Of a DNA stretch of 64,000 nt, positions 2 through 60,001 are shown one piece after another. Below the pieces are notes generated by a model. The model was not told the origin of the DNA. It saw only the letters and a list, made by a program, of their open reading frames with translations, and did not search any database. Position numbers and translations under genes: made by a program. How positions within the stretch are numbered: position 1 is the first letter of the stretch; every line of letters starts with the position of its first letter. The DNA is from Bugula neritina (lineage: Eukaryota; Animalia; Bryozoa), in NCBI GenBank assembly GCA_964035545.1, contig OZ037769.1:14104633-14168632 (forward strand), in the 5' to 3' direction.

Positions 2-952
2 AATACCCTCCCAACAAGAATAAAACCAGAAATCGGAAATGGAAATTCTATACATACTGAAATACAGATGATGTACAAACACACTAAATCTATTTTGAAA
101 GAAAAAAAATATAAAAATAGAATAATATTGGTTTACTCTACATACATTCCTTGCTCTCAGAATCAGTTTCACAATGGTGGTGTTTTTCTAGAATGCGCAG
201 GAGAAATGGCAAATTTTGTTGTAGATAAAACTGTAAATGAAGGGAACAATCGATTTATTGTTTTTTATGAAACTGTACATAAGAAGAAGAACACAGTAAT
301 TGAGGTATCGCAGCTCTACATGGAACTGAGTGGGATAATAGCTCTAAAGTACAACCCAAACACCGGTGACTTACGGAGAGATAAAAGACTTTTGCCAGAA
401 TTCACAGACCACTTGAGAGATCAGCCAATGTTTCTAAGACTAAGCCGCCCTCTGTTGAATAGTACTTACCAAGCGACTGGTACTCAACTGTTTGTTGACT
501 GTTTGGCTCGTAATAGTGTTAAAAATCATCCGCCAGAAAAAAACGTGCAATTCACAGTTGCAAAGTACCAACTCTACCACGATTTTTCTATGGGCACGAA
601 CAAAATTGTAGATGAAAATGAAATGGACAAAGCTTTAATAGCAGCTTTGAAGAATACAGATCAATCCAAAACGCAAAAGGCTTATGCTTTAAGTTGTGGT
701 GTGTTTGCTAAAGCTATGTTTAAAGACAAAATTAAACATGATTCGATTATAGTTGAAAAGCAGACGACTGACTATTTTTCATTTGACTCTATAAATATTG
801 CTGCATTGACGCCTAATGAACAAATTCAAGAAAATAAATTTACTTTTAACACAAAAGATGAAATGAAAGCATGCGTTATTTCTCTTCGTAGAGCTAGAAA
901 CCGTTTCGGATTTGACAAAACAGATCAGCTAAGTTGTAAACTTAAATCTTAA
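2..952 (+). CDS. AID/APOBEC/SNAD-like zinc-dependent deaminase paralog 1 (5' end outside window)
   Basis: Frame is open from position 2 (NTLPTRIKPEIGNGNSI-HTEIQMM; HTE at 53-61), so the ORF-track Met at 68 is internal. Motifs: HTE, ILVYSTYIPC-x13-C (PCSQNQFHNGGVFLEC), RFIVFYE, LYMELSGIIALKY. Clear paralog of the minus-strand gene (28/34 identical residues across the PC..C block). Confidence 0.75.
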   Translation, partial: NTLPTRIKPEIGNGNSIHTEIQMMYKHTKSILKEKKYKNRIILVYSTYIPCSQNQFHNGGVFLECAGEMANFVVDKTVNEGNNRFIVFYETVHKKKNTVIEVSQLYMELSGIIALKYNPNTGDLRRDKRLLPEFTDHLRDQPMFLRLSRPLLNSTYQATGTQLFVDCLARNSVKNHPPEKNVQFTVAKYQLYHDFSMGTNKIVDENEMDKALIAALKNTDQSKTQKAYALSCGVFAKAMFKDKIKHDSIIVEKQTTDYFSFDSINIAALTPNEQIQENKFTFNTKDEMKACVISLRRARNRFGFDKTDQLSCKLKS

Positions 953-1005
953 TTTTTTTTATTTTAATTGGATAAACCAACTGATTGTTTTTACCTGGTA
1001 TAATT

Positions 1006-1007
<2 letters not shown>

Positions 1008-1069
<62 letters not shown>
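1008..1069. repeat. (TA)n microsatellite
   Basis: Pure TA dinucleotide run. Confidence 0.95.
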
Positions 1070-1071
<2 letters not shown>

Positions 1072-1149
1072 AATATTACGTAAAATTACAAAATATGTCT
1101 CTTTTGTGCGCAAATAAACGTAAAATACTAAAAATAATTTTGATATGTA

Positions 1150-2030
1150 ATAATTATTGTTTGTTTTCCTTTAAACTGATCTTTTTGGATTTTGAAAAGC
1201 TATTGTTGCTTTTTCTAACTTGTTTCTATATTTCAATTTTTTTCAAAATAATTATTAAAATGTATGCTGGTTTTGAGGAGTTTAATTGCTATATATAATA
1301 CCTTTAACAGATAACTGTGTGCTATATGCACAATTTATTATGTCATCTATAGTTATTAAAACTTTTTTGCTACTGCATGTTGACAACTTTTATAGAAACT
1401 TATTATAGAGCCTATATATAGCAAAAATTATTATTAGAAATTTTCTTTGTTTTATAACACTCATAAGTTCATTTCAAATGACATTGTTATATATGCTAAG
1501 GTATCTAGAATTTTTTCAATAAGTTTATATGATCTTGAAAATAGCAGCAAAATTTTGACCTATATGTATTAGCAACAAAGATTTATTCTATAATGTAAGT
1601 CTCCTCAGTATATAGAGAAATATCAATGTTTTGTTCTTCTTGCAACAAATTTGTTGATTTTCCTAACTTGTTTTTATGTTTCAAATATTTTCAAAGTATT
1701 AAAAAATTATGCTGGTTTTGATGAACTTGGTATATAATCATCTTTTATAACGCAATTATGTGCTACATGTGTAATATGTAATGGAGTTTTGTTATTAAAA
1801 CTTGGTTTCTGAATACTGGTGACTGTGGTATTGTTGTAAATAAATGTTTCAGGAAACCTAGCAAAAATTATTGTTATTATTTTCTTTATTTCTACGCACT
1901 CACGCAAATATTTCAAATGAGCTCATTGTACTAAAGCTCCTAGGACTTTTGGTAATAAGTTTATAGAAAATATAAGCAGTAATTGTTTATCCTAATAATT
2001 ATATCATTAACAATCATTCATTCTATAATT
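1150..2030 (+). repeat. Degenerate ~450-bp direct tandem duplication
   Basis: Matching blocks: ttttctaacttgttt..tatgctggttttga (~1210-1275 vs ~1660-1720); gcaaaaattatt..acactca..tttcaaatga (~1420-1480 vs ~1860-1920); aataagtttata (~1518 vs ~1954). Boundaries approximate. Confidence 0.6.
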
Positions 2031-4987
2031 CCAGTAAAGATAAATTATTATTTTGATGTATGCAGAAACTTCAAAGTTCAAGTCATTCATACAATAGCAA
2101 CGTTTTCAAATGACTTGAAATAAAAAATTATCGTTTGATAGCTTCAAAGTCATACAATTATAAGCATGATAATGCTGACGTAATTGTTGGTTGCGAAATG
2201 TTTCATCAAAAGACGTAAAATTTAAAAATAATCAACAAATAGATGTGAAGCTAATTAGCTAAGTACTATTTAGTGAGTTCATGTTTTGAGTTTCAGTTTT
2301 GCAATTTTGTTCCAATCAATCAGGCAACATGTTAGTTCAGATGATGAATAAAATATCAAAATAAAATAATTTATAACCCGGGCCGGGCAGCAAAACATTT
2401 GTCAAGTGCCATTGATCACTAGAGTTATGCCCTCACTGGTAACTCCTGCGTTCAATTTTGCACTAGTAATTTGGTTCAATTACTGCATGAGTGCTCAAAC
2501 CAGTGTTACGTGACACAGTTATGTATTCAAGTTAAATTTTTTTTGTTTTTAGAATTTATACTGCTGTTTTAAAAAACAATTGATTAATATCAAAATATAT
2601 GTTAGCAGCTTATGCGCAATGCAATCAAAAATTTTCTCTTGATCATTGCTATATAATATAGGAATCACCTTTTTTAGCTACTGAATTTAGCAAATACTAT
2701 TCTGTTTTGTGTAAACTTTAAAGATGAATATACTTCGACACAAATTTGGTTGTGTTCATTTTGTAAGCCAATACAATATTATGTCAATAATGCCTTAATG
2801 ATCTTTTGAATTACAAAAAACATTTAAATTATTTAGCATTATATCTGAGTCACAAATTAAACTGCTATCTTATAGTTTTTGAAACTGATGCTCTGTTGAA
2901 GCAAAAGAAAATTGCTGACTTCTTAATGAGGGCTATTGCTCTAGCATAATACGCCAACTTTATATAACAGTACAGCAAAAATGGGTAGCTAGTTTTATTT
3001 TCTAGACTGACAACTCCATATTCCCACATAACTTTGCTCTGTCCTGTGCAAAAAATATAATATTATACTAAGTACACAGGGAGTTGTTCGTCCACAAGAC
3101 AACACTAGCTATATCAGCTTTGCCTATTATGGCCTGCACTGTTATAAATTAGTTTCACCATAACAATTTAATTTCATAAAAATAAAAATGAAATATTATA
3201 AAATTGTATCATTATATAAAATGCACAACAGTTACCAGGGCTTCCAATTAAATATAGATTCTTTTGGGAGTTAAACTATTATATTCTAGTATAAAAAATT
3301 AAATATCTATATATACTCCACAAAGCAGTAATTAGGAAATGATTGAGTAGTGAAGCCTCTAAGCTCTGTAAATGGTTTCAGAATGTTTTGTTATTACAAA
3401 CTTTTTTGCAATGTTAATTCCTAAACAAATAAAATAGAAATTCAAATTCTAATATATACTCCCCACAATATATACTATATTGAATAGGCTAGAACCTTAA
3501 AAAATTTGCACCTCGTCAACTAAGCATTATTTAGCAGAGTGCTATATTGAAATATGGGAGTTAGAGCTGCTAAAAATATCGTAGTACATTTTTAGTTGCC
3601 ATGGTTGAATAATGCAAATAGCAAGCTTTGTGTTGCTTAAATAATTGGTATAATCTCATGCACAACTTAAAATTTTAAATAACTATATCGGAGCCTATTT
3701 ATTTGATCATATAAAATACTTCTTACCTTTCTCCAACATATCCTGATCGGACAACTATAATATGAATCATTTATGAAACATATATGTAAGCTATACAACA
3801 TTCTCTCTTTTATCTTAGCCTCTTAATATTATTTTGAGATTTATTCAAATAGTATAAAATGTCATCAATTTGTAAATCATTGACGTTATTTGCCACAATT
3901 TAATGATCTAAAATATGTCATTATATTTGAATGCTAGAAGGCTCTCAGCTGTTGAAGGAGTGTCTATTATGTAAAACAAAATCCTTAGTACGTTTGTTGC
4001 AAAATTGTGAATATCTTCAGTATAGCTATACTTATATTTTGCTAATATTCATTGTAAACCTTATTTAGGTCCAGCTTTCTTTTGTTATAAGTATATACTA
4101 AACAGTACTATAGACAACTGAAAGGCTTAGAGTCATGTTTTAGACGCTTTAAGTTACTATTAAGTCTGAATCATACTTGAATTTTATATAATAAATGATT
4201 AGTAGCCTTGACCTATAAATAATTACAAGAGATGCCATACCATATAGTATTATAAAAAAAAACCAACTCCGTTTGATTAAACATGTGACACTAAGCAAAC
4301 AGTTAGCACCAAATGTCTTATTTTAATTAATTAGGCCTAATCATTGCAGCATTTCTTCACAATTCCAACAGCAAAAACAAGAAAAATGTCTTTTAGTTTT
4401 TTTTTTCATGCTATAACACGCCAGTAAAATGTTTTAAAAATAAGTTTTTACATAGCGTTTGGCATTGATTGTGTATATTTGTTCGTTGTACGCTAGCATT
4501 TGCTTTTTGGAAAAAGTGTTTTATTGCATCGCTGGAATTTTAAATAAGCAGCTTTCATATCTGAACAAGTGTTGAATTGAAGAGAGCAATACTTATATTT
4601 ATACAGCTTGGGCTGCGTCTAGGGAATATGGAATATAAGGTTTCTATAGTAATAAATATCAGTATAAATTATAGTATTCAGACTGCTCACAATATTTATT
4701 ATTCAACTTATCAAAATTGAATGCTACATTAAATACACCAATTAAAAGGAGACACATAAATTAGACAAACAACTTCTAATGGGCTAGATAATTGCATGGT
4801 AGCAATTAAAATTCAATATTTTCAAATAGTGCTTAGAATTTTGTATAATAGAGAAAGATAAAACTTTTTAGTTCATAGAAATTGACGCAAAATATTTTCA
4901 ATTGGAAGGAAAATTATTGCTTTCTATAAAATCAAGTTTGCAAAAAGGGATTAAAAACAACTTTTGATAAAACATGATATTAGTGAT

Positions 4988-7900
4988 TTATGAAACTAGG
5001 CCACAAACTTCTTGTTTTTCTCGTGGAACCTGGAAGTGTGCTATGAATTCGGGAAGGAAAGCCCTACAGGATTCTTGTTTTGTAATACGATCAAATTTCA
5101 CCCTCTCCATCTCCCTGTTTGATTTCGGAGAACCATTAAACGAAAGAAACGCTGTGGTTTTCTTTTCCACCGCAATTGCATTTGTTTTTTGGTTCCCATA
5201 CATTATTTGGGCATATCTATAGCAGCCTAATACTTTAGATCTTTGTTTTCTTGTCATGTCATTAACTCGATAAGCTGCTTTGTGAAGAGTTTTCAAATTA
5301 TCGGAATCCATTGAAAAAGCTTTATAAAGTTGACATTTTGCTGCAATAAACTGCACTTCTTGTGTTGTCATTGAATCTGATCTGGCTGTTATAAAATTGT
5401 TACGTGCAATACAATCAACATACAGTTGGGTAGAAGTAGTTTTATACGCATCACTCAACAGGGGGCGCCCTAGTCTAATGAACTTTGGAAAATTTCGAAA
5501 ATAAGTTGCAAACGTAGGAAATATTCTGGCAATCCGCTTTAATTTGTTGGTGCCTGGAGTGTATTTAAGGGCTATAATACCACTCATTTCCATGTAGAGC
5601 TTTGCTACTGGTGAAATTGTCTGCTCATGAATTTCTTCATAAAACACAATAAACCGAATTCTTCTCGGGTTGTTATTGACGATGAAGTTAGCCATCTCCC
5701 CAGCACATTCTAAAAACACTCCACCTTCTGCCCCTTGATTTTGTGCGCAGGGAATGTATTTAGAGTAGACTAAAATTATTTTATCTTCGTTTTCTTGTTT
5801 GGTAAGAATATTGTTACCCTGTCGGTGCATCATTTGTATTTCAGTGTGTATCACATGGTCACCACGCAATTCAAAAAAGTTTTTAATTTTGGTTGGAAGA
5901 GCTTCAATATTTTGCAAGCATTCTCTGTTGCACACACCTCTTCCTCTTTGACTATTCGCTGCAAAGTTACTGTAGATCTGATCTCCACTTACAGGCTCTT
6001 TTGTTAAAACCAGAGGTTCAGCAGCCCCTTCTCTTGCTTTCTCAATTTGCAGAGGAGTGGCCACAACCCATTGTACGTAGCCTTTGTCTGGACGAGCATC
6101 ATAGAATTCTCGCAGTTCACCAGCAATTCTCGCTAACTGTGTCCTTAGTGTGTCCCGAATATCAGAATCTTTTTTCTTACCGAGTTCTGTCATCAACAAA
6201 TCCGCCTTCTGCTTTTCTTCTTCAGTTGCCTGAGCATGTTTCACAAGAGCAAGAGTGGATATTAGAGCCAAAGATATCTAAAAATACGTAACAATTTTGC
6301 AAATGTGACTGTATGATTATAACTTCCAATGTCACAGCAAAAATCGTAAAGTTTTTTAAGTTTCTTATATTCCCTGATATAATTCACACAGCAACTTGAA
6401 AAGACAAATGCAACTATATATGTATAGCTGCAGTGTCGAGTGTTTAAAAGGAGCAATATTCGTCAACGAATCTAAAAGTTTTGTTTGCGTTTATTAATGT
6501 GATTCAAAGATTTGTATTCAAAATAACACCAGATGCGTCTATAATAATGGCTTAAGACTAAAAGAAAAGAATAGCATCTTTATTTTTTATCAAAGCAGCC
6601 GTGATTTAGGGGTTAGAGGTTTTGCCTAGTAAGCACGAGGTCATAGGTTCTATAACCCCGACAAAGGCCATATTGGTGATTTTGGGAAGAGCATCCAGTC
6701 ATAACTGCTCTTGTGCCCCGTTTGAACAAGCCCTTAGCCTGATTTAACAAAAACCCCTTTTATTCAAGGGTTTTTTACAGGGAGAACTACTGTAAACTTG
6801 CGTAAGTTTTTTTTAAATTTTCTATCAAAATATTATTTGCTATTGACAAAGTTAAAATTCAATATTATAAATGACTTCATATATATAGGGCAAACTTCCT
6901 AATATAGTTATTGGGCAGATGTTGGCAACTAAATGCTGTTGCTTATAAGTAATGTGACTAACTTGTTGTAACCCAAATAACTTTCTTAATTTATTTTAAT
7001 GCGCAAATTATGTATACCCATATGCACTCGATTTACATTATTTTTTTAAATCAATAATTTTTATTTTCTATCCGCTTGTTTACTTTTATTTCAAAAATAA
7101 AACATCAAACTTGTGTAAATACAACCTTTGTTTTTAAACAATTATTTTACTATAAATACTATTTTGTTTTTCATATCTTTCTACTATATATATTCGAAAT
7201 AACTAATAAATTATTAGTAAGCTGGAATTTGCAGTATTTTTTCCTCAAGCAAATCCTGTATACAACTAGTTTTCAATGTTTTCAACTGTTACAAATTAGT
7301 CTCAAATTTGATTTCTTATAAGAAAATATATTTGAGGTAGGTGCAGTAAAGGAAAAGCTGATAAAATGCAACAAAAGAAATTATGTTTTCATACTTATGT
7401 GAAGAAATCAAAATTCATTAAAAAAAATTAGGAAACTCAAGTTATTGAAAGTTGATTTTTTACTGCAGTTGAATATATTTACTTTGAAATGAATTAAGTT
7501 CTTGTATTGAATTTTTTCTGCAGATTTCAAAATAACCAACTGTCATGAAGTCAAGCATGAGCCTCAGAAGCCAATAACATATTTAATAGTAAATAAAACA
7601 TTCAACTAAAAATCGCATGTGCCTCAAACTCTATGGGCGATTGAAATATTTTTTTATTTAAATAATTTATCTGTTTTCAAGAGAGATTTTTGTCTGTAAA
7701 TTAAAATACTTTAAATACACCATGCATGCATATTTAACTACTGCTTGAGGAACTTCATCAATAACTATTTTGTTACAATATTGAAATTAAGTTTCACATC
7801 ACTGCTGTATATTATAGTAAGCATAATTTAGTGCCTGTTATTTAAGATTTTGTTTAACATTCACAAAACTTTGAAAAAAATAACTGAACTCCTTAACTCA

Positions 7901-8536
7901 TCAAAGTATGTATCAGTAATACTCATGAAGTCATTTAATTATATACTTAATGTACGAATTGTGTTGATTATGCAGTCAATTATGCAAATCTATTAATTGA
8001 TCATGCATTTCCTATATAACATCTATGAAACAGGTATTAAAATATATACCAAGTATGGTTCTATTATTAACTTCGAAATTAAGACCATTCAGGATAAAAA
8101 CAAAGCAATTAGATTAAGTTTCTCAGCTTCTAATTCTAATCAATGCCAGAAAGTTTTCAAGTATTTGTATTTTAGCAAACAATAATAGTATCATAGCAAT
8201 AGAACTAGAAAAATATTTAAAAACCTGATAGGTCAAAAATAATATTTTGTTTCTATAATGATTTATTATGCCATAATTATTTTCCCTACCTGATCAGGAA
8301 ATGGCGGTGAAAGTTTATTATAATTATTATATATTTTCTATATAATAATCTATAGGGTTCATATAATCAAAACCCCTATTGGCTTATCTAATTTGCATGC
8401 AGGAAATTTAACTATTCTATCATTTATCAGATGTTTTTCTCCAACTATATAATATATTTAATTAATTGAGCAATCACTACTGTATATGAGAAAAATAATA
8501 ATTAGTTATACTTACAGAAAAAGTAGATAACTTCAT
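4988..8536 (-). CDS. Secreted AID/APOBEC/SNAD-like zinc-dependent deaminase paralog 2 (~436 aa, 2 coding exons)
   Basis: Exon 1 8536..8516 (gcagcaATG, MKLSTFS, donor GTAAGT). Exon 2 6277..4988 follows acceptor tatttttAG in phase 0. Joined N-terminus MKLSTFSISLALISTLALVKHAQA-TEEE is a typical signal peptide. HTEIQMM (HTE 5848..5840), YSKYIPC-x13-C, RFIVFYE, then a ~190-aa Cys-containing C-terminal extension. Confidence 0.8.
6595..6805 (+). mobile_element. tRNA-derived SINE, family A
   Basis: gcagccgtgatttaggggttagag..ggtcataggttc..aaaggcc..tggtga..ggaagagcatccagtcataa; the same sequence recurs at least 6 times in the window. Confidence 0.8.
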
Positions 8537-8593
8537 TGCTGCCACAAGTTCTACGAACTCTACCGAAAGTGACACTTGCTAGAAAAAGGCGAT

Positions 8594-8600
8594 TTTTATA
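8594..8600 (-). promoter_or_regulatory. Candidate TATA box of deaminase paralog 2
   Basis: TATAAAA on the minus strand about 60 bp upstream of the ATG at 8536. Confidence 0.45.
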
Positions 8601-9543
8601 TGCTATAGTAATGCATTACACGTAACACCCAGTATAATATATGCCTACATAATGTGAGGCTTTGTAATGCCAAACCTAAACAAGTTTTATGAGGTTCTTG
8701 CGTCATGCCTGTTTCATTATTACATATCAAATATTAATTACAGTTGTATATACAGCTGTGGGTTGTTTTTCTACTAAAAACTATTCGAGCATTTATTAGA
8801 AATTGTTATTAAGAGGGTGAAATCGAATGGAACCATATATTACCAATATTGTTATAGGTTCGGGAAAATAAGGCATTCAGCATTGCACATATATAAACAC
8901 TGTAATTAATACAGTTTAAAACTGAGATTTAAAACTGGTTTTGTAATTATTATATTATTATACAGTGTGGTTTAGCTTAGAAAATTATGAATTTCATTTA
9001 TGATTGGAGGTTGAAAAAACACTTATTAATGTTAAAATGTCAAAAACGTTTCCATTTAAATTAGTTTATTAGAATTTTGTATATTGACTTGATAATTTTA
9101 TTGATACAATTTTAAACAGTTAAGCAGTAATATTTTATGCTGGAATGAAAGTTTTACTCAGAACTATAAATAGGTTTATAATAGCAAACAACTTTGAATT
9201 ACTTTCATTCTATTTTGATGCATGTTGGTACTTATGGTATATATCTCAAGGACTTGAGTGGTTTCTGGTTGTTGACACTAATTCAGCTAGATATAGATTT
9301 TAGATAGTCAAGAGTGTCTTAAGAAGGTATTAAGTTAAAACACCACTTTATTCTTGCACCATCTTACCTGCTACAAGTATACATTGTATGTCAATATAGC
9401 ACCTGGCAGCTCATAAATATTTATTTCAGTAAAAGGGTATAACTGGGTTCATCTACAGCCATTAGTTTTAAAATATGCTGAAACAGTCAGTCATTTCATA
9501 TCTAAGTCTTGTTTAGTTTTCTGCAATATACAGCATCATTAGA

Positions 9544-26863: not shown

Positions 26864-29800
26864 TTAGCAAATCACGCAAATCGAGCTTTTAGAAGTAACT
26901 TGAGAGGAGGATTTGAGATTGGCAGCGACGCGACGTAAAGCACGACGTTTTGCTGCTTCAATGTACACATCTCGTCGAAACTGACCACCTGACAGCGGAA
27001 TCGTATCTCTTCCAGGCTTCAAGTTGACCTGCAAAAGCAAAGAACGTAGACATCATATTCAAAGAGTATATGGACCTGAGGTAGAGAGTATATACACCTG
27101 AGGTAGAGAGCATATACACTTGAGGAAAAGAGTAAATATACCTGAGGTAGAGAGTATATACACCTGAGGTAGAGAGTATATATACCTGAGGTAGAGAGTA
27201 TATATATCTGAGGTAAAGAGTATATACACCTGAGGTAGAGAGTATATACACCTGAGGTAGAGAGTATATACACCTGGAGTACAGATTATATACACCTGAG
27301 GTAGAGAGTATATAGCCCTGAGGTAGAGAGTATATACACCTGAGGTAGAGAGTATATACACCTGGGGTGGAGAGTATATACACCTGGGGTGGAGAGTATA
27401 TACACCTGAGGTAGAGAGGATATATACCTGAGGTACAGAGTATATATACCTGAGGTAGAGAGTATATACACCTGGAGTACAGATAATACACACCTGATAA
27501 AGAGCATACACTGGTTTGTGATCTGAACACTTCACTTCAGGGGCAGACAAATATTTCTTGCAGACAATGCCGTGTTTCCTTTTAGATTTGAACAAGATCC
27601 TGTCAGTGTAGGAGGGGATGCGGCACTTCGCCGTCGTGTCGTACACGTCGGTGCCTATCAACAGCGAGCGATATGTATGATTGGTCAGTAGAGCAGTGAT
27701 AGGAAATCTAGGCTTGGAAAAAAAGGGCTGCAGTTGCATAAAAGTTTTAGCAAGTTTTACCCAACATCATGCACAATGACCGCCTTAAAACAGAGTCTTA
27801 TGTTCAGGAATTATTTAGAAAATTAAGTTTTAAAGCGTCTATATTCATACTCAGCTTTATCAAAATTAAATTTGAATATAACATCCATAGTAATCTTGCT
27901 TAGTATCAATTCAAAATTGGAGTTGTTTTCACAATCACTTTGTTTCAAATCATGCTATACATGTTACATCATCGACTTTTACAAGAGGAAACAATTCCAA
28001 CCCAGGCTATAGCCAGCTAAGCACCATGCTAGGTGAGTAGTAGCAACATATTAGTTTGCCTGAACACTTGAATTAAAGCCTTCAAAATGCAGGTACACGG
28101 CTCATGCATCTAAAGCATTATTTTGGAATAAATCATTTAAAACACGCAAGCGCATATGTTTTCTTTTCTACTCTATTATTTATAAAAAAATAGTGGAAGT
28201 ATGGCTTTTAGATTTATCTAAAAATTCAGCTAAAATAAGAAATATTAATAGAGAAGTCTAGAGAAAAGTTTGATTCAAATAAACACTTTGTAGCCATCAC
28301 TAAAGAATAAATAGAAGTAAGAGGGTAGAAGTGAATCTGCAGCCAATCAGTATGCAGTCTGCTGGTATCAACTAGCCAATCACAATTCAGAGCCCAATAA
28401 CACATGGAGTATATAGAGTAATTAGCCAATAAGAATAGTTTTACCACCACCAGTTTGAATGCCAACATCTAGCTTACTGGTGACAACTGATCACTAATGA
28501 ACACTATTAGTCACTACTGGTCACTACTGATCACTATTAGTCACTACTGATCACTATTAGTCACTACTACGCACTACTCGAGACTACTAGCAACTGCTAG
28601 ACATTATTGAATACTAGTAACCATTAGTGACTAATAATGACTCACTGCAAACAGCTAATGTACCAGAAAAAGATGGTTAGTCATTGAGCCAGAGAATACG
28701 AACATAGCAGACGGCAAGTACTAAAACCCGCAACTTACTTAAATCATCTATAACATACAAGCACAGGTAATTGAATTTAGTGAACTAATGAAAAAAATCA
28801 GTTGAAACAGAATAATGAAAAAGTTAGGAAAAGTATGCTTCATGAAAAATAGTGATAATTATGACATCATTGTGAAGAAACTCGAAGCATAATATCAGCG
28901 AGTAACAAAGTTAGTAAGTCCATAGCTCTTGTTTCCTGCTCAGTGATGACATGTTAGTGTAACTGTTTAGATGACCACAAACTTTGCTTACTAAGTCAGC
29001 ATCTACACAAAATCTAGTAAAAACCAAAGGCAGGTGACATACATGATACTCAGCAATACAACCCAATAATAGTTCAACTGATATTTTAAGAATAGTCTAA
29101 AAATTATTTTATACAAATAATAATTGGTTAAAGAATCGTGAAGACTTATTGGATGTTTAGAGTTGTAATCCCAATGATGAGAAGACAATTCCTTGCTGAG
29201 GCCATGAAATTTTCTTATGCTGATTATTAGCTACAAATTAATTCAAAATCTCACGAGGTAAGACCACAACAAATACAATCACAGCTGCTGACAAAAGCAT
29301 GACAATACCCTATGCAGATGAGGCAGAACCACCTTACCGGGATCAAACTTGTATGTTGGAGGGAAGTTTATTTGCCCTTCCTGGAAATCTTCAAATATTT
29401 CCCCGTTGGCCATGCCACGAGTCAGCTCCTCGTGTTCAAGCAAAGGTTCGTAGTTGGGATGATCTTTTAGCTGCACCGATTTTATCATTTTTATCACAGA
29501 TTCTCTATCTTTGTTGATTCTAAAGTTGAGGTCACCAGCCCAAAACACGCAGTCAAATCGGAGAGACGCAAGGGGCGGGGTTTGTTGTAACGGGTTATCT
29601 ACGACAGCGCGAGGTAACTTCAACGTCCTATTAATAGTCTTATAGTCAGATACTCTGGCTTTACCATTGCCCTCATCAGATTTAAAATGTGACCCGATAA
29701 ATACAAAAGATGTGCCAAACATAGTGAATGATAACGCCACAGCGCCTTTGGTTCGGATTTGTTTGAACACTCTCACAGTGACGGTGTCCGACTCCGGGAC

Positions 29801-32800
29801 GGAACAATACCAGATCAGCTCCCGTTTCATCAGCACAGCGATGTGTAGAGTTCCGTGCTGCACTGAGTGATACACAACATGGGAGGGGCCAACAGTTTCC
29901 TGTAACGTCAGCTCCCACTCACGTCTGTCCAGTTCGTTTTCCTGAGTCGTTATAACAAACATGTCCGGCACAAACTCGAGACTTTTGGGAAGGATAAAGT
30001 CTTCTATACTGTCATCCAACTGTTTCAACTCATAAATATTCCACGTGCCGACAAATATGTTGATGTTTCTATCGGGAAAAGTGCGATCAAGTTCGGTGGC
30101 GCCCATGACGCTAGAATGAGATTGTTTTTGACCCACAAGGAAATTCTTGTGTCTGGCCGTGGAAATTCTGAGTGACTGTATGCCGGGTGATGATGCTGTC
30201 GTATTCACACTCAAAGTGCTCGCTGACCTTCGCATTGTGTCGTCAGCCGAGGTGCCGATAGCTTCCAGCCCTGGAAACAAACACAATAATATATTACACA
30301 CAAATTGTAACCTAAAATCCATAAATGGGACGACTCCAAATTTCTAGATCAATAATAAAAACTGGTACGAATCAATTTTCTATCTAAACATTAGAACATG
30401 CTAGAATACTAGAACATAATATAGCACCTATTTTACTGCGTATGACTTCCCAGTTACGTTTGCTGGATCTCACGCTTTCACTGATGTTTGGCATGGAGTC
30501 AGATTTTGACATCTGGTTAGGTTTGGTGATGCTACTACTTCTATGGATTGTGTTTGAGGAGGGCTTCGGGCTGGGAAATGCAGGGGCACCACCTCGTCCA
30601 GGACTTGGGAATGCAAGCGCACCCCCTTTTTGAGGACTGGATAGAAGCTTTTCGTAATTGAGTGCCAGCTACAAAAATATGTTTAGTTACTATGAAATTA
30701 TTTATATTAATCAATGTTAAGGAAGACAATATGATATCAAGTTTGGTACATGAAGATGGACATACTGCATTAAATTGAGAAATAAACAGGAAAGAAGACA
30801 ACTCACACGTCCAAGTCAAATTATTTCATATATTCACAAATCATGGGCCTGGCAGCTCATTACTAAACACAAGCAATCAAAAGCAAACATCTGAATTCAC
30901 AATAAAATTCAAATTATATAATACAATATAAACACTAGAATGTTGTAGTGTCATCTGATCAACGACAAATTCTCACTTCATCATTATCTTCGGCATCTTC
31001 GTCCGTTTCCACGACGTCATTCATATCAATCTTGTCGAGAAGTCTGCCAGAAGCGGGAGCAATCGGCTTGAAACTGGTCTCCTCTATAAAGTAGAGAGTT
31101 ACAAATCTCAGAGAATATATACAGAACACAGTTGGCGTAGATATTCTGAATATTATGAGTTTCTGGTCACATGACGGCTTTCTCTACTGACCCATCGTAA
31201 AATGTAAAAAATTTTGCCGCTATTTTCTGCTTTGTGAACCTGACCATAAGCATTGGTCTAAGATTACTGAGGAGACATACTATTCAACTGACTGCAAATA
31301 AACACCAATCAAAACAATGATCATAATTATAATGGACTCGGCAGTTTTTCGCTTATTTACTTGTAAAATCACAAAAGTTCTTCACAAAGTACAGAATTTA
31401 TTATTCTATATATTAATTTAAAAGATGAATCCAACATTTTTTGAAACTCCTCAAATTAGTTAGAATTTATAAATCAATATGTATCATGTAAGCAAAGAGA
31501 TGCGGTATTATCTATTGCACTAAATAAGACTAGTCGCTTTCAGGCAGCTGAAGAAATGAGCTTCACTAGAGTACACCACTAAAGGTAACCTTACCAGAAG
31601 GTAGCCGAAGTTTATCCGTTACTTTGAGGGGTGAGGCGGGTTCGGTTACCACAGTCCCTTCTTCAGCAGAATTCTCATTCTGAGCATTTCTGGAAAGAAA
31701 GAACAAAAATTAGCTAATCCCACAAATGCATCTGGAAAAAGGGTCAGTAATTCTAAAAGTATCCAATATCTATAAACTAATAATAAGGCAATAAAACTAC
31801 TCATTAATTATATTCAGAATGTTGATGACACAAAGAGGAGAGTTAGTGGGCTTTACAATCTAGACCCTAGCATTGCCGAAGCTTAAGACGATTTCATCAA
31901 AACTCTAGCAGAAAAGAAACTGAAATCTTTCCTTTTTTTCTTACTACACTTGCTGTATAATGAATAAGTAAATTTTTTTTTTCATGAAACCACATATGCA
32001 ATCACAGTGTTCATTGGGTAACTTGCTGATCAATAAAATGCCTCAACATATTTACCATTACGCAGTTCACTACGGGCTTCAATTTACTCACTTAGGAGAC
32101 ACACCAGTGGGTTCTACAGCACCATCAGTACTTTTAGTTGGGGTGGGGGTAGACAACACCCCGCAATCATCTATGAGCCTAAGATCTGGAACTTCAGCAG
32201 ACCTGAGAGAGGAAAGAGATCCATTCAGGTTCTGCTTTTCCTTTAGACGGCTCAGGGCCCCTTTGTGTTTCTTCTTACGAGAACTTAACGGAGGTTCTGA
32301 GTCTATAAATATTGTTGAACTCAGGCTATCATTGTGTAAGCTAGTTAATCATCAAGTAACTAAGAACTCAGCTAAAATTGTTTATGAGTAGAAACTGTCA
32401 CAAAAATTCACCAAACACAGACAAAATTATGTTTCTATCGAAAAATGTATGGAAAACATGTACGTGTGGGATTTTAATTCAAAACGCAAATCATCTGTGG
32501 AGTAGAGCTAAAAATAAAATTACAAGTACAGCTAAGAGAATAATTTTAAATAAAATTTGGTAGCCTTGATATGATAGTAAAAGTTGGTGAGGCAGGGTAG
32601 TTATAAAAGTGGAGACATTTAAACTAAAAATAAACTGGATATACACGCAACAGGATGTATTGTAAAGTTTTTTTATTTTTATTACTAGTTTAATTACAAC
32701 ATATAGAGAGCAGTTACAAACTGACATGCAATATGTGCAAGGTCATGGGTTCAAACACGGCCATTTGTGATATCAGGGAGAGCATTAGTCATAATCGCCC

Positions 32801-57564: not shown

Positions 57565-59033
<1,469 letters not shown>

Positions 59034-60001
59034 GAAAAACCTTATAGCTGTTGATTAGCTTATCATTACTTTGCACCAACTCAAACTGCATCTTATTTTA
59101 TTTTGACTGTAGAAACTAATAGTATATATTTACAGTTACCTAATGATTAGACAAAAATTATATCGAAACTTGTATAAATTGTGTAAGATATCTAAATTAT
59201 TAACGAAGGAAAAATGCAATCTGTAACTCAAAAATGGGTGATGTCACTAGGTAATAAAATGTTATATTTTCCTTTTAATGAACAGAGAGAACAACTTATT
59301 AAAATAACATCCTGCAAAGATATCAAAAAAGTCAATTATTTTCTGCATGTGATGTATTAGCAAAAATAGAAATTGAAATAAAGCACCATCGATAGAATCT
59401 TTCTAGAGCAGGTAGTCACTACACAGCATAAAATTTATATAGATTATATAAATCAAGATTTTAGGCATATATATATAAATAAACCAAATAAAAAAATTAT
59501 CCAGAATTGTCAGTCTGGTGCATTCTAAATTAAATTGAGTGTAAAAATAAAAGTAAATAACCACCCACAGTCCCATTGAGTTGTTTTAGGGCCCACTCAA
59601 AAATTGAGAGCTTGTTGAGTTATACTTAAGTAGAGTTGAGTTTGAAGAACTATACTTAAGTAGAGTTGGGGTTTGTAGAATTACAATTGTGTAAGGCTGA
59701 GTTACCCAAACTGAATATTTAATTTTGTTTTACAAACTTTTATCAAATCACTGAGCCTATCTCTGATCTACTTGAATAATTTTCTTTTATTTTAACTAAC
59801 AATTTTATGCCACCAGAGGCGATTGGAAGAGAGATTGTAAACTCGATCTTCATTGGCTGCACAAACTTGACACAAATGGGATTAATAAATATTTGCATTA
59901 TTTCATATATTACATTGTTTTTAGTTGTTTTGTGAAAAACATCTTTTATCTGTAAAAAGACTCTGCTCCAATTCTTAGTTGGTTTGTCCGTTAGTTATAG
60001 C

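Follow-up and report, generated by a model that had tools for sequence, protein, structure and literature searches.

A 64,000-nucleotide stretch of the genome of the bryozoan Bugula neritina (contig OZ037769.1, positions 14,104,633 to 14,168,632; hereafter the window), composed of AT-rich eukaryotic DNA with approximately 30% G+C, carries near one end a pair of genes that we read as encoding AID/APOBEC-like deaminases (AADs) of an undescribed clade. [quoted passage not shown] Paralog 1 lies on the forward strand, where the last 316 codons of its large exon form an open frame from the window edge (positions 2 to 952, with the stop codon at 950 to 952); the exon starts 383 nt before the window, and its full frame of 444 codons corresponds to L007:1462-2793. 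Paralog 2 lies on the reverse strand, where its second exon, of 429 codons (4988 to 6277, with the stop codon at 4988 to 4990), encodes the end of the signal peptide and the mature protein. The two proteins are 42% identical across 321 residues (BLASTP E value, 2e-77), a score that identifies them as true paralogs and not as carriers of chance motifs. An earlier, first-pass annotation of this DNA had described two paralogs on opposite strands with stop codons about 4 kb apart; both frames exist, and the tail-to-tail stop codons are separated by 4,036 nt.

Both paralogs encode residues that may bind zinc and catalyze deamination. In paralog 1, the sequence and the alignment place H-T-E, the putative zinc-binding histidine and catalytic glutamate, at positions 53 to 61 and the second zinc-ligand motif, P-C...C, at 149 to 196 (both forward strand). 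In paralog 2, the alignment and an AlphaFold2 model place H144-T145-E146 at 5840 to 5848 and P176-C177...C191 at 5705 to 5752 (both reverse strand), the latter motif containing a 13-residue insert in loop 5 with low model confidence at residues 183 to 186. The HTE and xYxPC..C motifs reported for each paralog in the first-pass annotation are therefore present, with a cysteine spacing of PC-x13-C in both and not the PCxxC arrangement. The listed open reading frame (ORF) of paralog 1 begins only at a methionine codon at position 68, and its H-T-E is consequently absent from the list of ATG-started ORFs, as had been noted. H-T-E, Y-S-x-Y-I-P-C, and the second cysteine (within E-C) are common to all 21 close relatives, with the exception of a single proline-to-leucine change at residue 176. 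In a core alignment of 40 sequences, some of them from very remote members, the histidine and both cysteines never vary, and the threonine and glutamate of H-T-E are conserved at a level of at least 90%; nearly all of the remote matches from profile searches (E values of 1e-26 to 5e-4) retain H-T-E, Y-S-x-P-C, and the second cysteine. The cytosine pocket of AADs is formed by the catalytic histidine together with a loop-3 asparagine, for which a small residue can stand in, and a loop-7 aromatic residue, and the latter two limit the pocket to pyrimidines (PMC5889660). N104, which directly follows strand 101-103, and Y213, toward the end of strand 4, show conservation of 90% or more among the 40 sequences, approximately like the zinc ligands, and judged by their position in the sequence and secondary structure, they fall where the loop-3 asparagine and loop-7 aromatic residue of AADs would be expected.

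The cytidine-deaminase fold comprises a five-stranded sheet in the order 2-1-3-4-5 with interleaved helices, an H/C/D-x-E motif at helix 2, and a C-xn-C motif in which n is at least 2 and which spans loop 5 and the start of helix 3, the two motifs supplying the zinc ligands; its helix-4 division includes Tad2/TadA, ADAR, dCMP deaminase, and the AID/APOBEC-like enzymes. Our structure and sequence searches used exon 2 or its parts and not the spliced protein. The AlphaFold2 model of paralog 2 exon 2, computed from a 21-sequence alignment (mean predicted local distance difference test [pLDDT] score, 83.3; predicted template-modeling [pTM] score, 0.86), together with the structure searches, delimits a deaminase core at residues ~40 to 262 (5492 to 6160, reverse strand). 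The model contains an N-terminal helix, helix 42-61, strands 70-80 and 89-93, and short strand 101-103, followed by a cysteine-containing loop-3 insert of about 40 residues, the helix of which bears the invariant C116-x3-C120. H144 is situated at the N terminus of helix 145-151 (helix 2); strand 167-174 (strand 3) leads to P176-C177 and a 13-residue low-confidence loop; C191 begins helix 191-201 (helix 3); and strand 208-215, helix 222-231, strand 235-240, an extra short strand at 245-248, and helices up to residue 415 complete the chain. In this model, the zinc-ligand residues occupy the canonical secondary-structure positions as defined in PMC5889660. Assignment with DSSP places helix 4 (222-231) between strands 208-215 and 235-240, the strand 4-helix 4-strand 5 order that defines the helix-4 division and makes strand 5 parallel to the sheet (PMC5889660).

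Two structure aligners gave concordant results. The top 50 Foldseek matches in the PDB were nearly all APOBEC3A/B/C/F/G/H, AID, APOBEC1, and human dCMP deaminase, with E values of 1e-3 to 2e-2 and probabilities of 0.7 to 1.0, most of them at least 0.9. When an independent aligner was run against 48,161 chains, deaminase-fold families, namely, deaminases and the sister FdhD, AICAR-transformylase, LpxI, and Tm1506 groups, filled 41 of the 42 top rows (Z scores of 9.5 to 4.6), with Rib2 at 9.5, AID at 8.6, ADAT2/3 at 8.5, and T4 dCMP deaminase at 8.3. Realignment of the Foldseek matches yielded 107 chains with a Z score of at least 8; APOBEC3A/B/G aligned over 130 to 147 residues, the whole domain, with Z scores of 9.0 to 9.7, and dCMP deaminase and Rib2 scored 9.9 and 9.6, respectively. 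The modeled core is a cytidine-deaminase fold of the helix-4 version, in keeping with the fold put forward in the first-pass annotation, since both aligners return mostly chains of this fold. A match to an unrelated family was also sought, and none was found in Pfam or among PDB sequences searched with the full-length family profile, which gave no match of any kind.

Within the fold, the evidence points toward the AID/APOBEC-like enzymes. In the language-model feature space of the ESM Atlas, the nearest group was a mollusc cluster (0.91), followed by SNAD1/2 (0.88 and 0.87), SNAD3 (0.79), and APOBEC4-like proteins (0.76), and a shape search of the Atlas gave a template-modeling (TM) score of 0.67 to a SNAD1/2 cluster and of 0.62 to a dCMP_cyt_deam_1 cluster; SNAD1/2 are the best named matches by both features (0.88) and shape. 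Among 30 relatives that were scanned, subthreshold deaminase Pfam hits over the motif region were nearly all of the AID/APOBEC type: the best was to APOBEC3 (1.3e-4; 22.5 bits versus a cutoff of 27), others were to SNAD1 (2e-3 and 8.8e-3) and SNAD4 (4.7e-3), hits to NAD1, NAD2, APOBEC_N, Inv-AAD, and APOBEC2/4 ranged from 0.02 to 0.07, and a single bacterial toxin-type model (XOO_2897-deam) appeared at 0.11. No Pfam AID/APOBEC model reaches its threshold for the proteins or the loci, and we therefore assign the family to an undescribed clade and not to SNAD1 to SNAD4. The SNAD models PF18744, PF18749, and PF18750 match neither the proteins nor the loci, and PF00383 (dCMP_cyt_deam_1) matches neither paralog. 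Membership of SNAD1 to SNAD4 was considered and rejected, given the lack of any SNAD Pfam match and a different pattern of conserved cysteines. Of the affiliations offered in the first-pass annotation, membership of the SNADs or of the Pfam AID/APOBEC families has to be abandoned, and the suggestion of a possible new clade is the part that fits, as no described family was matched.

Comparison with known systems sharpens this placement. Features in common with the SNADs (PMC5889660; PF18744, PF18745, PF18749, and PF18750) are an N-terminal signal peptide, predicted here, an AID/APOBEC-like core, additional conserved cysteines suited to disulfide formation, and lineage-specific tandem expansions. 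The insert between the zinc cysteines is like that of SNAD3, the long loop-3 insert is like that of SNAD2, and the extra short strand after strand 5 recalls the SNAD1/2 hairpin; in contrast, the four-cysteine cluster in strands 5 to 7 of SNAD1/2 and the helical insert in loop 9 of SNAD3 are not seen, the other conserved cysteines here being C116, C120, C289, C350, and two C-terminal residues. Loop-5 inserts between the two cysteines are known from SNAD3 and from nematode and cnidarian-algal AADs (PMC5889660). The classical AADs (APOBEC3A/B/G/H, AID, APOBEC1, and the invertebrate AAD clades) share the fold, the helix-4 topology, and S-x-x-P-C after strand 3, and helix 3 of APOBEC3G resembles the C-A-x-E-M-A-x-F motif of the present family, which also has a conserved tyrosine at the end of strand 4; however, the classical enzymes are cytosolic or nuclear, lack a signal peptide, have PCxxC, and are only 12 to 16% identical to the family. 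dCMP deaminase and RibD/Rib2 belong to the same division of the fold and attain equal structural scores (Z scores of 9.5 to 9.9) but are intracellular, single-copy metabolic enzymes with PCxxC. The bacterial toxin deaminases DddA and SsdA are, as predicted for the proteins described here, exported deaminase-fold conflict effectors, but the structural match to them is far weaker (Z scores of 4.2 to 4.9), and the present genes, with their spliceosomal introns, belong to an animal.

Both paralogs are predicted to encode secreted proteins by way of a signal peptide that is split between two exons. Exon 1 of paralog 2 (8516 to 8536, reverse strand) is read from the sequence as an ATG followed by six codons (M-K-L-S-T-F-S), ends in phase 0, and is succeeded by a GTAAGT donor; a 2,238-nt intron (6278 to 8515, reverse strand) interrupts the signal peptide and ends in the acceptor TTTTTAG immediately before 6277. 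The mini-exon supplies M-K and the start of the hydrophobic core, and the first part of exon 2 (6227 to 6277, reverse strand) appears to supply the remainder of the core and then A-Q-A, with cleavage predicted after this motif, 17 codons into the exon; by inspection, the joined N terminus reads as a basic n-region, a hydrophobic core, and an A-x-A site. A diverged, ortholog-like relative of paralog 2, on Joint Genome Institute (JGI) metagenome contig L045 (coding sequence, 79% identical; protein, 71% identical), has all 21 nt of exon 1 and the GTAAGTA donor in identical form; similarity is lost about 40 nt into the intron and returns at TTTTTAG, the intron being ~0.7 kb in L045 versus 2.2 kb here. 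The 21-nt first exon that the first-pass annotation had proposed to complete the signal peptide is thus present in the sequence, and the exon, donor, and acceptor have been retained in this relative. Upstream of the exon, about 165 nt are ~90% identical to L045 and constitute a candidate promoter and 5' untranslated region (8537 to 8700, reverse strand), in which a TATAAAAA box at 8593 to 8600, 64 nt before the paralog 2 ATG, is common to both sequences.

The same design recurs in paralog 1, the mini-exon of which has eight codons (L019:3213-3236) followed by gtaagt, lies about 1.2 kb before the window, and is paired with an acceptor before L019:4051; both proteins are therefore predicted to be secreted, and the earlier claim that at least one of them is secreted was an understatement. 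In every paralog of the genomic array described below, the 5' end of the large exon encodes the latter half of a signal peptide, in which a hydrophobic stretch precedes a small-x-small site, and many remote relatives have an N-terminal signal peptide without interruption. A strict scan for the mini-exon pattern found only paralog 2, paralog 1, and the first array copy, a result that does not imply its absence in the other copies. When the promoter and exon 1 DNA of paralog 2 was compared with the genome, it matched only itself, indicating that exon 1 is not alignable among the paralogs at the DNA level. Contigs from one run labeled RNA-Seq and from two runs guessed to be RNA are ~93% identical to the window, cover exon 2 at ~4900 to 6094, and lack unique intron sequence, a weak sign of transcription; one of these runs touches positions 8456 to 8700 faintly. 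The paralog 2 intron also harbors a very high-copy-number repeat resembling a short interspersed nuclear element (SINE) at ~6551 to 6804, over which the summed contig depth rises from ~75 to between 34,000 and 228,000 in a DNA run and which abounds in the putative RNA runs as well; a scan of positions 1 to 10 kb with ARAGORN found no tRNA in the repeat.

Searching the genome in six frames, first with paralog 2 as the query and next with the profile of the 40-sequence core, identified about 14 intact copies and two with stop codons or frame breaks, in agreement with the lineage-specific expansion postulated in the first-pass annotation. Seven intact copies and one pseudogene form an array on C5, the contig that holds the window in a 216-Mb assembly, at 14.06 to 14.11 Mb; two further copies are found on C5 at 12.74 and 12.76 Mb, one is found on C5 at 9.04 Mb, and four divergent copies, one with a stop codon, are found on C2 at 32.90 to 32.93 Mb. 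The forward strand of the array holds the pseudogene and six of the intact copies, head to tail, with paralog 1 as the last of them; paralog 2 is the sole inverted copy, at the array end. The pseudogene (C5:14069227-14070206; L008/L011), about 35 kb before the window, has H-T-K for H-T-E, several stop codons, and frame breaks. A second, far more divergent subfamily, apparently with a shorter spacer between the zinc cysteines, comprises a small cluster of its own on another contig, at C2:32904460-32928454 (L038-L042), and C5:9036667-9037161 (L041). A TA-rich microsatellite, with alternating isoleucine and tyrosine codons in one frame, lies just 3' of the paralog 1 stop codon (~950 to 1100, forward strand).

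Outside this genome, a profile search of 1.84 billion representatives produced 42 matches. One remote relative adjoins innexin genes and is the sole relative whose flanks held a recognizable animal gene; that relative, at least, is accordingly an animal gene. Several remote matches come from metagenome records named "BRYA16," which may denote a bryozoan sample, and in one such metagenome, two remote members of 367 and 439 amino acids stand in tandem (L020:2270-6006 and L021:3584-7320), so tandem arrays of the family also occur elsewhere. Public protein searches returned no named proteins, only metagenome and Logan proteins and the Bugula neritina hypothetical proteins EB796_007869 and EB796_007870, which are similar, not identical, to the copies described here and on that ground place the genome in or close to the B. 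neritina complex of bugulid bryozoans; word-indexed protein searches with two alignments, directed at named SNADs and named animals, likewise returned only metagenome and Logan proteins and the two B. neritina hypothetical proteins.

Rates of nonsynonymous and synonymous substitution (dN and dS) indicate that the genes are under purifying selection and are functional and constrained, a conclusion drawn from gene-wide dN/dS ratios of 0.2 to 0.56. The ratio was 0.21 to 0.26 (dS, 0.22 to 0.24) for two segments of paralog 2 compared with its ortholog-like counterpart on JGI metagenome contig L044 (88 to 91% protein identity), 0.33 (dS, 0.57) for paralog 2 versus L045, and 0.56 (dS, 0.08) for the youngest array duplicates (91% protein identity); older paralog pairs were either saturated or gave ratios of 0.14 to 0.32. 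These gene-wide values do not show rapid adaptive diversification, a trait by which the first-pass annotation had characterized the known secreted AID/APOBEC-like families, nor do they show positive selection across the gene as a whole. In L044 (positions 1 to 1100), the coding sequence appears as two ORFs that overlap, with a frame break in the loop-5 insert at residues ~183 to 187; the assembly may be at fault, or else the copy is broken in that lineage.

Beyond the deaminase core, the proteins of the close family share a conserved C-terminal helical module (residues 263 to 429; 4991 to 5491, reverse strand) with invariant cysteines, three of them beyond a near-invariant Q-x3-D-C-x-A-R-N motif. 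Folded alone, the module gave five helices and a pLDDT score of 82. It has no known fold: the best Z score against the PDB was 4.1 and the Foldseek E value was ~1, Pfam returned only noise, and the Atlas contained no usable match.

We suggest the following sequence of events for the reading that we favor. A gene composed of a tiny first exon (ATG plus six or seven codons) and one large exon would give rise to a protein with a signal peptide encoded on both sides of a phase-0 intron, a zinc deaminase domain, and a cysteine-containing helical module, and, if the N terminus behaves as predicted, this protein would enter the secretory pathway. On the basis of the model, His144, Cys177, and Cys191 may hold a zinc ion that activates water, and Glu146 would shuttle a proton. 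Cytosine in foreign single-stranded DNA or RNA might then be converted to uracil, either in vesicles or outside the cell, by analogy with the SNADs, and the C-terminal module may serve in target binding or delivery. Vertebrate and sponge SNADs are reportedly proposed to deaminate foreign nucleic acids.

A number of observations weigh against this interpretation. No Pfam deaminase model, AID/APOBEC or other, matches either paralog even at an E value of ≤10, and when the SNAD1, SNAD3, SNAD4, Inv-AAD, APOBEC_N, and APOBEC4_like models were run against the whole genome, none hit these loci; PDB sequence searches with the core and short-subfamily profiles gave only an insignificant match to helix 3 of APOBEC3G (E values of 1.6 to 1.7). 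The convergence of H144, C177, and C191 on one site is deduced from their secondary-structure positions in the model only. Because dCMP deaminase and RibD/Rib2 score as highly as the APOBECs, the fold alone gives no verdict on a nucleic acid versus a nucleotide substrate. In the three runs of uncertain RNA status, the contigs of which are ~7% diverged, none joined 8516 to 6277, and at the 88% cutoff a diverged intron might simply have gone unmatched; transcription and splicing are accordingly not demonstrated. Finally, the catalytic activity of the SNADs themselves was still uncharacterized in 2024 (PMC11004436).

The competing explanation that fares best, unlikely as we judge it to be, is that the enzyme, whether secreted or lumenal, deaminates free nucleotides, nucleosides, or a small pyrimidine or pterin instead of nucleic acids, in the style of dCMP deaminase, RibD, or blasticidin deaminase, with possible roles in salvage, in signaling, or in the detoxification of nucleoside-type natural products in a symbiont-rich animal. 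The tie of human dCMP deaminase (Z score, 9.9) and Rib2/RibD (Z scores, 9.5 to 9.6) with the APOBECs and the TM score of the dCMP_cyt_deam_1 cluster speak for such an activity, but the ranking by Foldseek E value, the language-model features, and nearly all of the subthreshold deaminase Pfam hits favor an AID/APOBEC-type enzyme, conserved N104 and Y213 fit, by position, the cytosine pocket of AADs, and some 14 diverging, arrayed paralogs are typical of conflict genes and not of housekeeping metabolism. Another possibility, which we consider doubtful, is that the proteins are offensive toxins directed against competitors, fouling organisms, predators, or the larvae of other species, the C-terminal module being a cell entry or receptor-binding part, in analogy to the polymorphic-toxin deaminases of bacteria. 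The signal peptide, the conserved cysteines of disulfide type, the extra conserved module, and the tandem expansion would all suit a toxin, and SsdA and DddA do share the fold, but the likeness to bacterial toxin deaminases is far weaker than that to AID/APOBEC; as the biochemistry would be the same as that of the deaminase acting on foreign nucleic acids, the two explanations differ only in biological role.

A catalytically dead protein that has kept its zinc site for stability and binds nucleic acid or another ligand has precedents in the inactive N-terminal domains of APOBEC3 proteins and the inactive urochordate AADs (PMC5889660). We regard it as very improbable here, as 47 of 50 aligned relatives retain the catalytic glutamate, a residue that zinc binding does not require, and in the one clear pseudogene of the array H-T-K goes along with stop codons. 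It is barely credible that chance alone produced the motifs in a protein without the deaminase fold. Curated deaminase families yield no significant sequence match, but this fold is the common outcome of the Atlas searches by features and by shape and of both structure aligners, which work independently of each other, and the motif residues lie in canonical places.

A more ambitious version of our preferred reading, that of a secreted deaminase editing foreign nucleic acids, would make the family a fifth, lophotrochozoan branch of an ancient secreted AID/APOBEC-like lineage that bridges sponge SNAD4 and vertebrate SNAD1 to SNAD3 and has acquired a new C-terminal delivery module, yielding an extracellular nucleic acid-editing effector. 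We advance this only tentatively and think it unlikely; if it were true, the module would be the part with which a mutator deaminase of animal origin attaches to, or gets into, foreign cells or virions. Descriptions of secreted AID/APOBEC-like deaminases are, to our knowledge, confined to vertebrates, sponges, and slime moulds. The published account assigns SNAD1 to SNAD3 to vertebrates and SNAD4 to sponges, with none from any lophotrochozoan, adds secreted AADs of dictyosteliids, and makes no mention of bryozoans in its text (PMC5889660), and our full-text literature searches found no paper on bryozoan secreted deaminases. A large bryozoan family, intact, under purifying selection, and missed by all current family models, would add a new animal phylum to the range of secreted editing-type enzymes, close a phyletic gap, and lend weight to the idea of an early-animal split of secreted from classical deaminases. 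It would also supply compact, essentially single-exon natural variants for tests of secreted-deaminase function and might offer cytosine deaminase scaffolds with unusual loops 3 and 5 for base editing.

The first-pass annotation had further remarked that the mature protein is encoded by one large exon, unlike its intron-rich neighbors. The large exon stands; the neighboring genes were checked only loosely. A single ORF of 508 codons at 57565 to 59091 (reverse strand) matches no Pfam family at an E value of ≤0.001. An Exo_endo_phos2 (endonuclease/exonuclease/phosphatase family 2) gene at 27059 to 30322 (reverse strand) is spread over at least two ORFs and is on that account an intron-containing neighbor.

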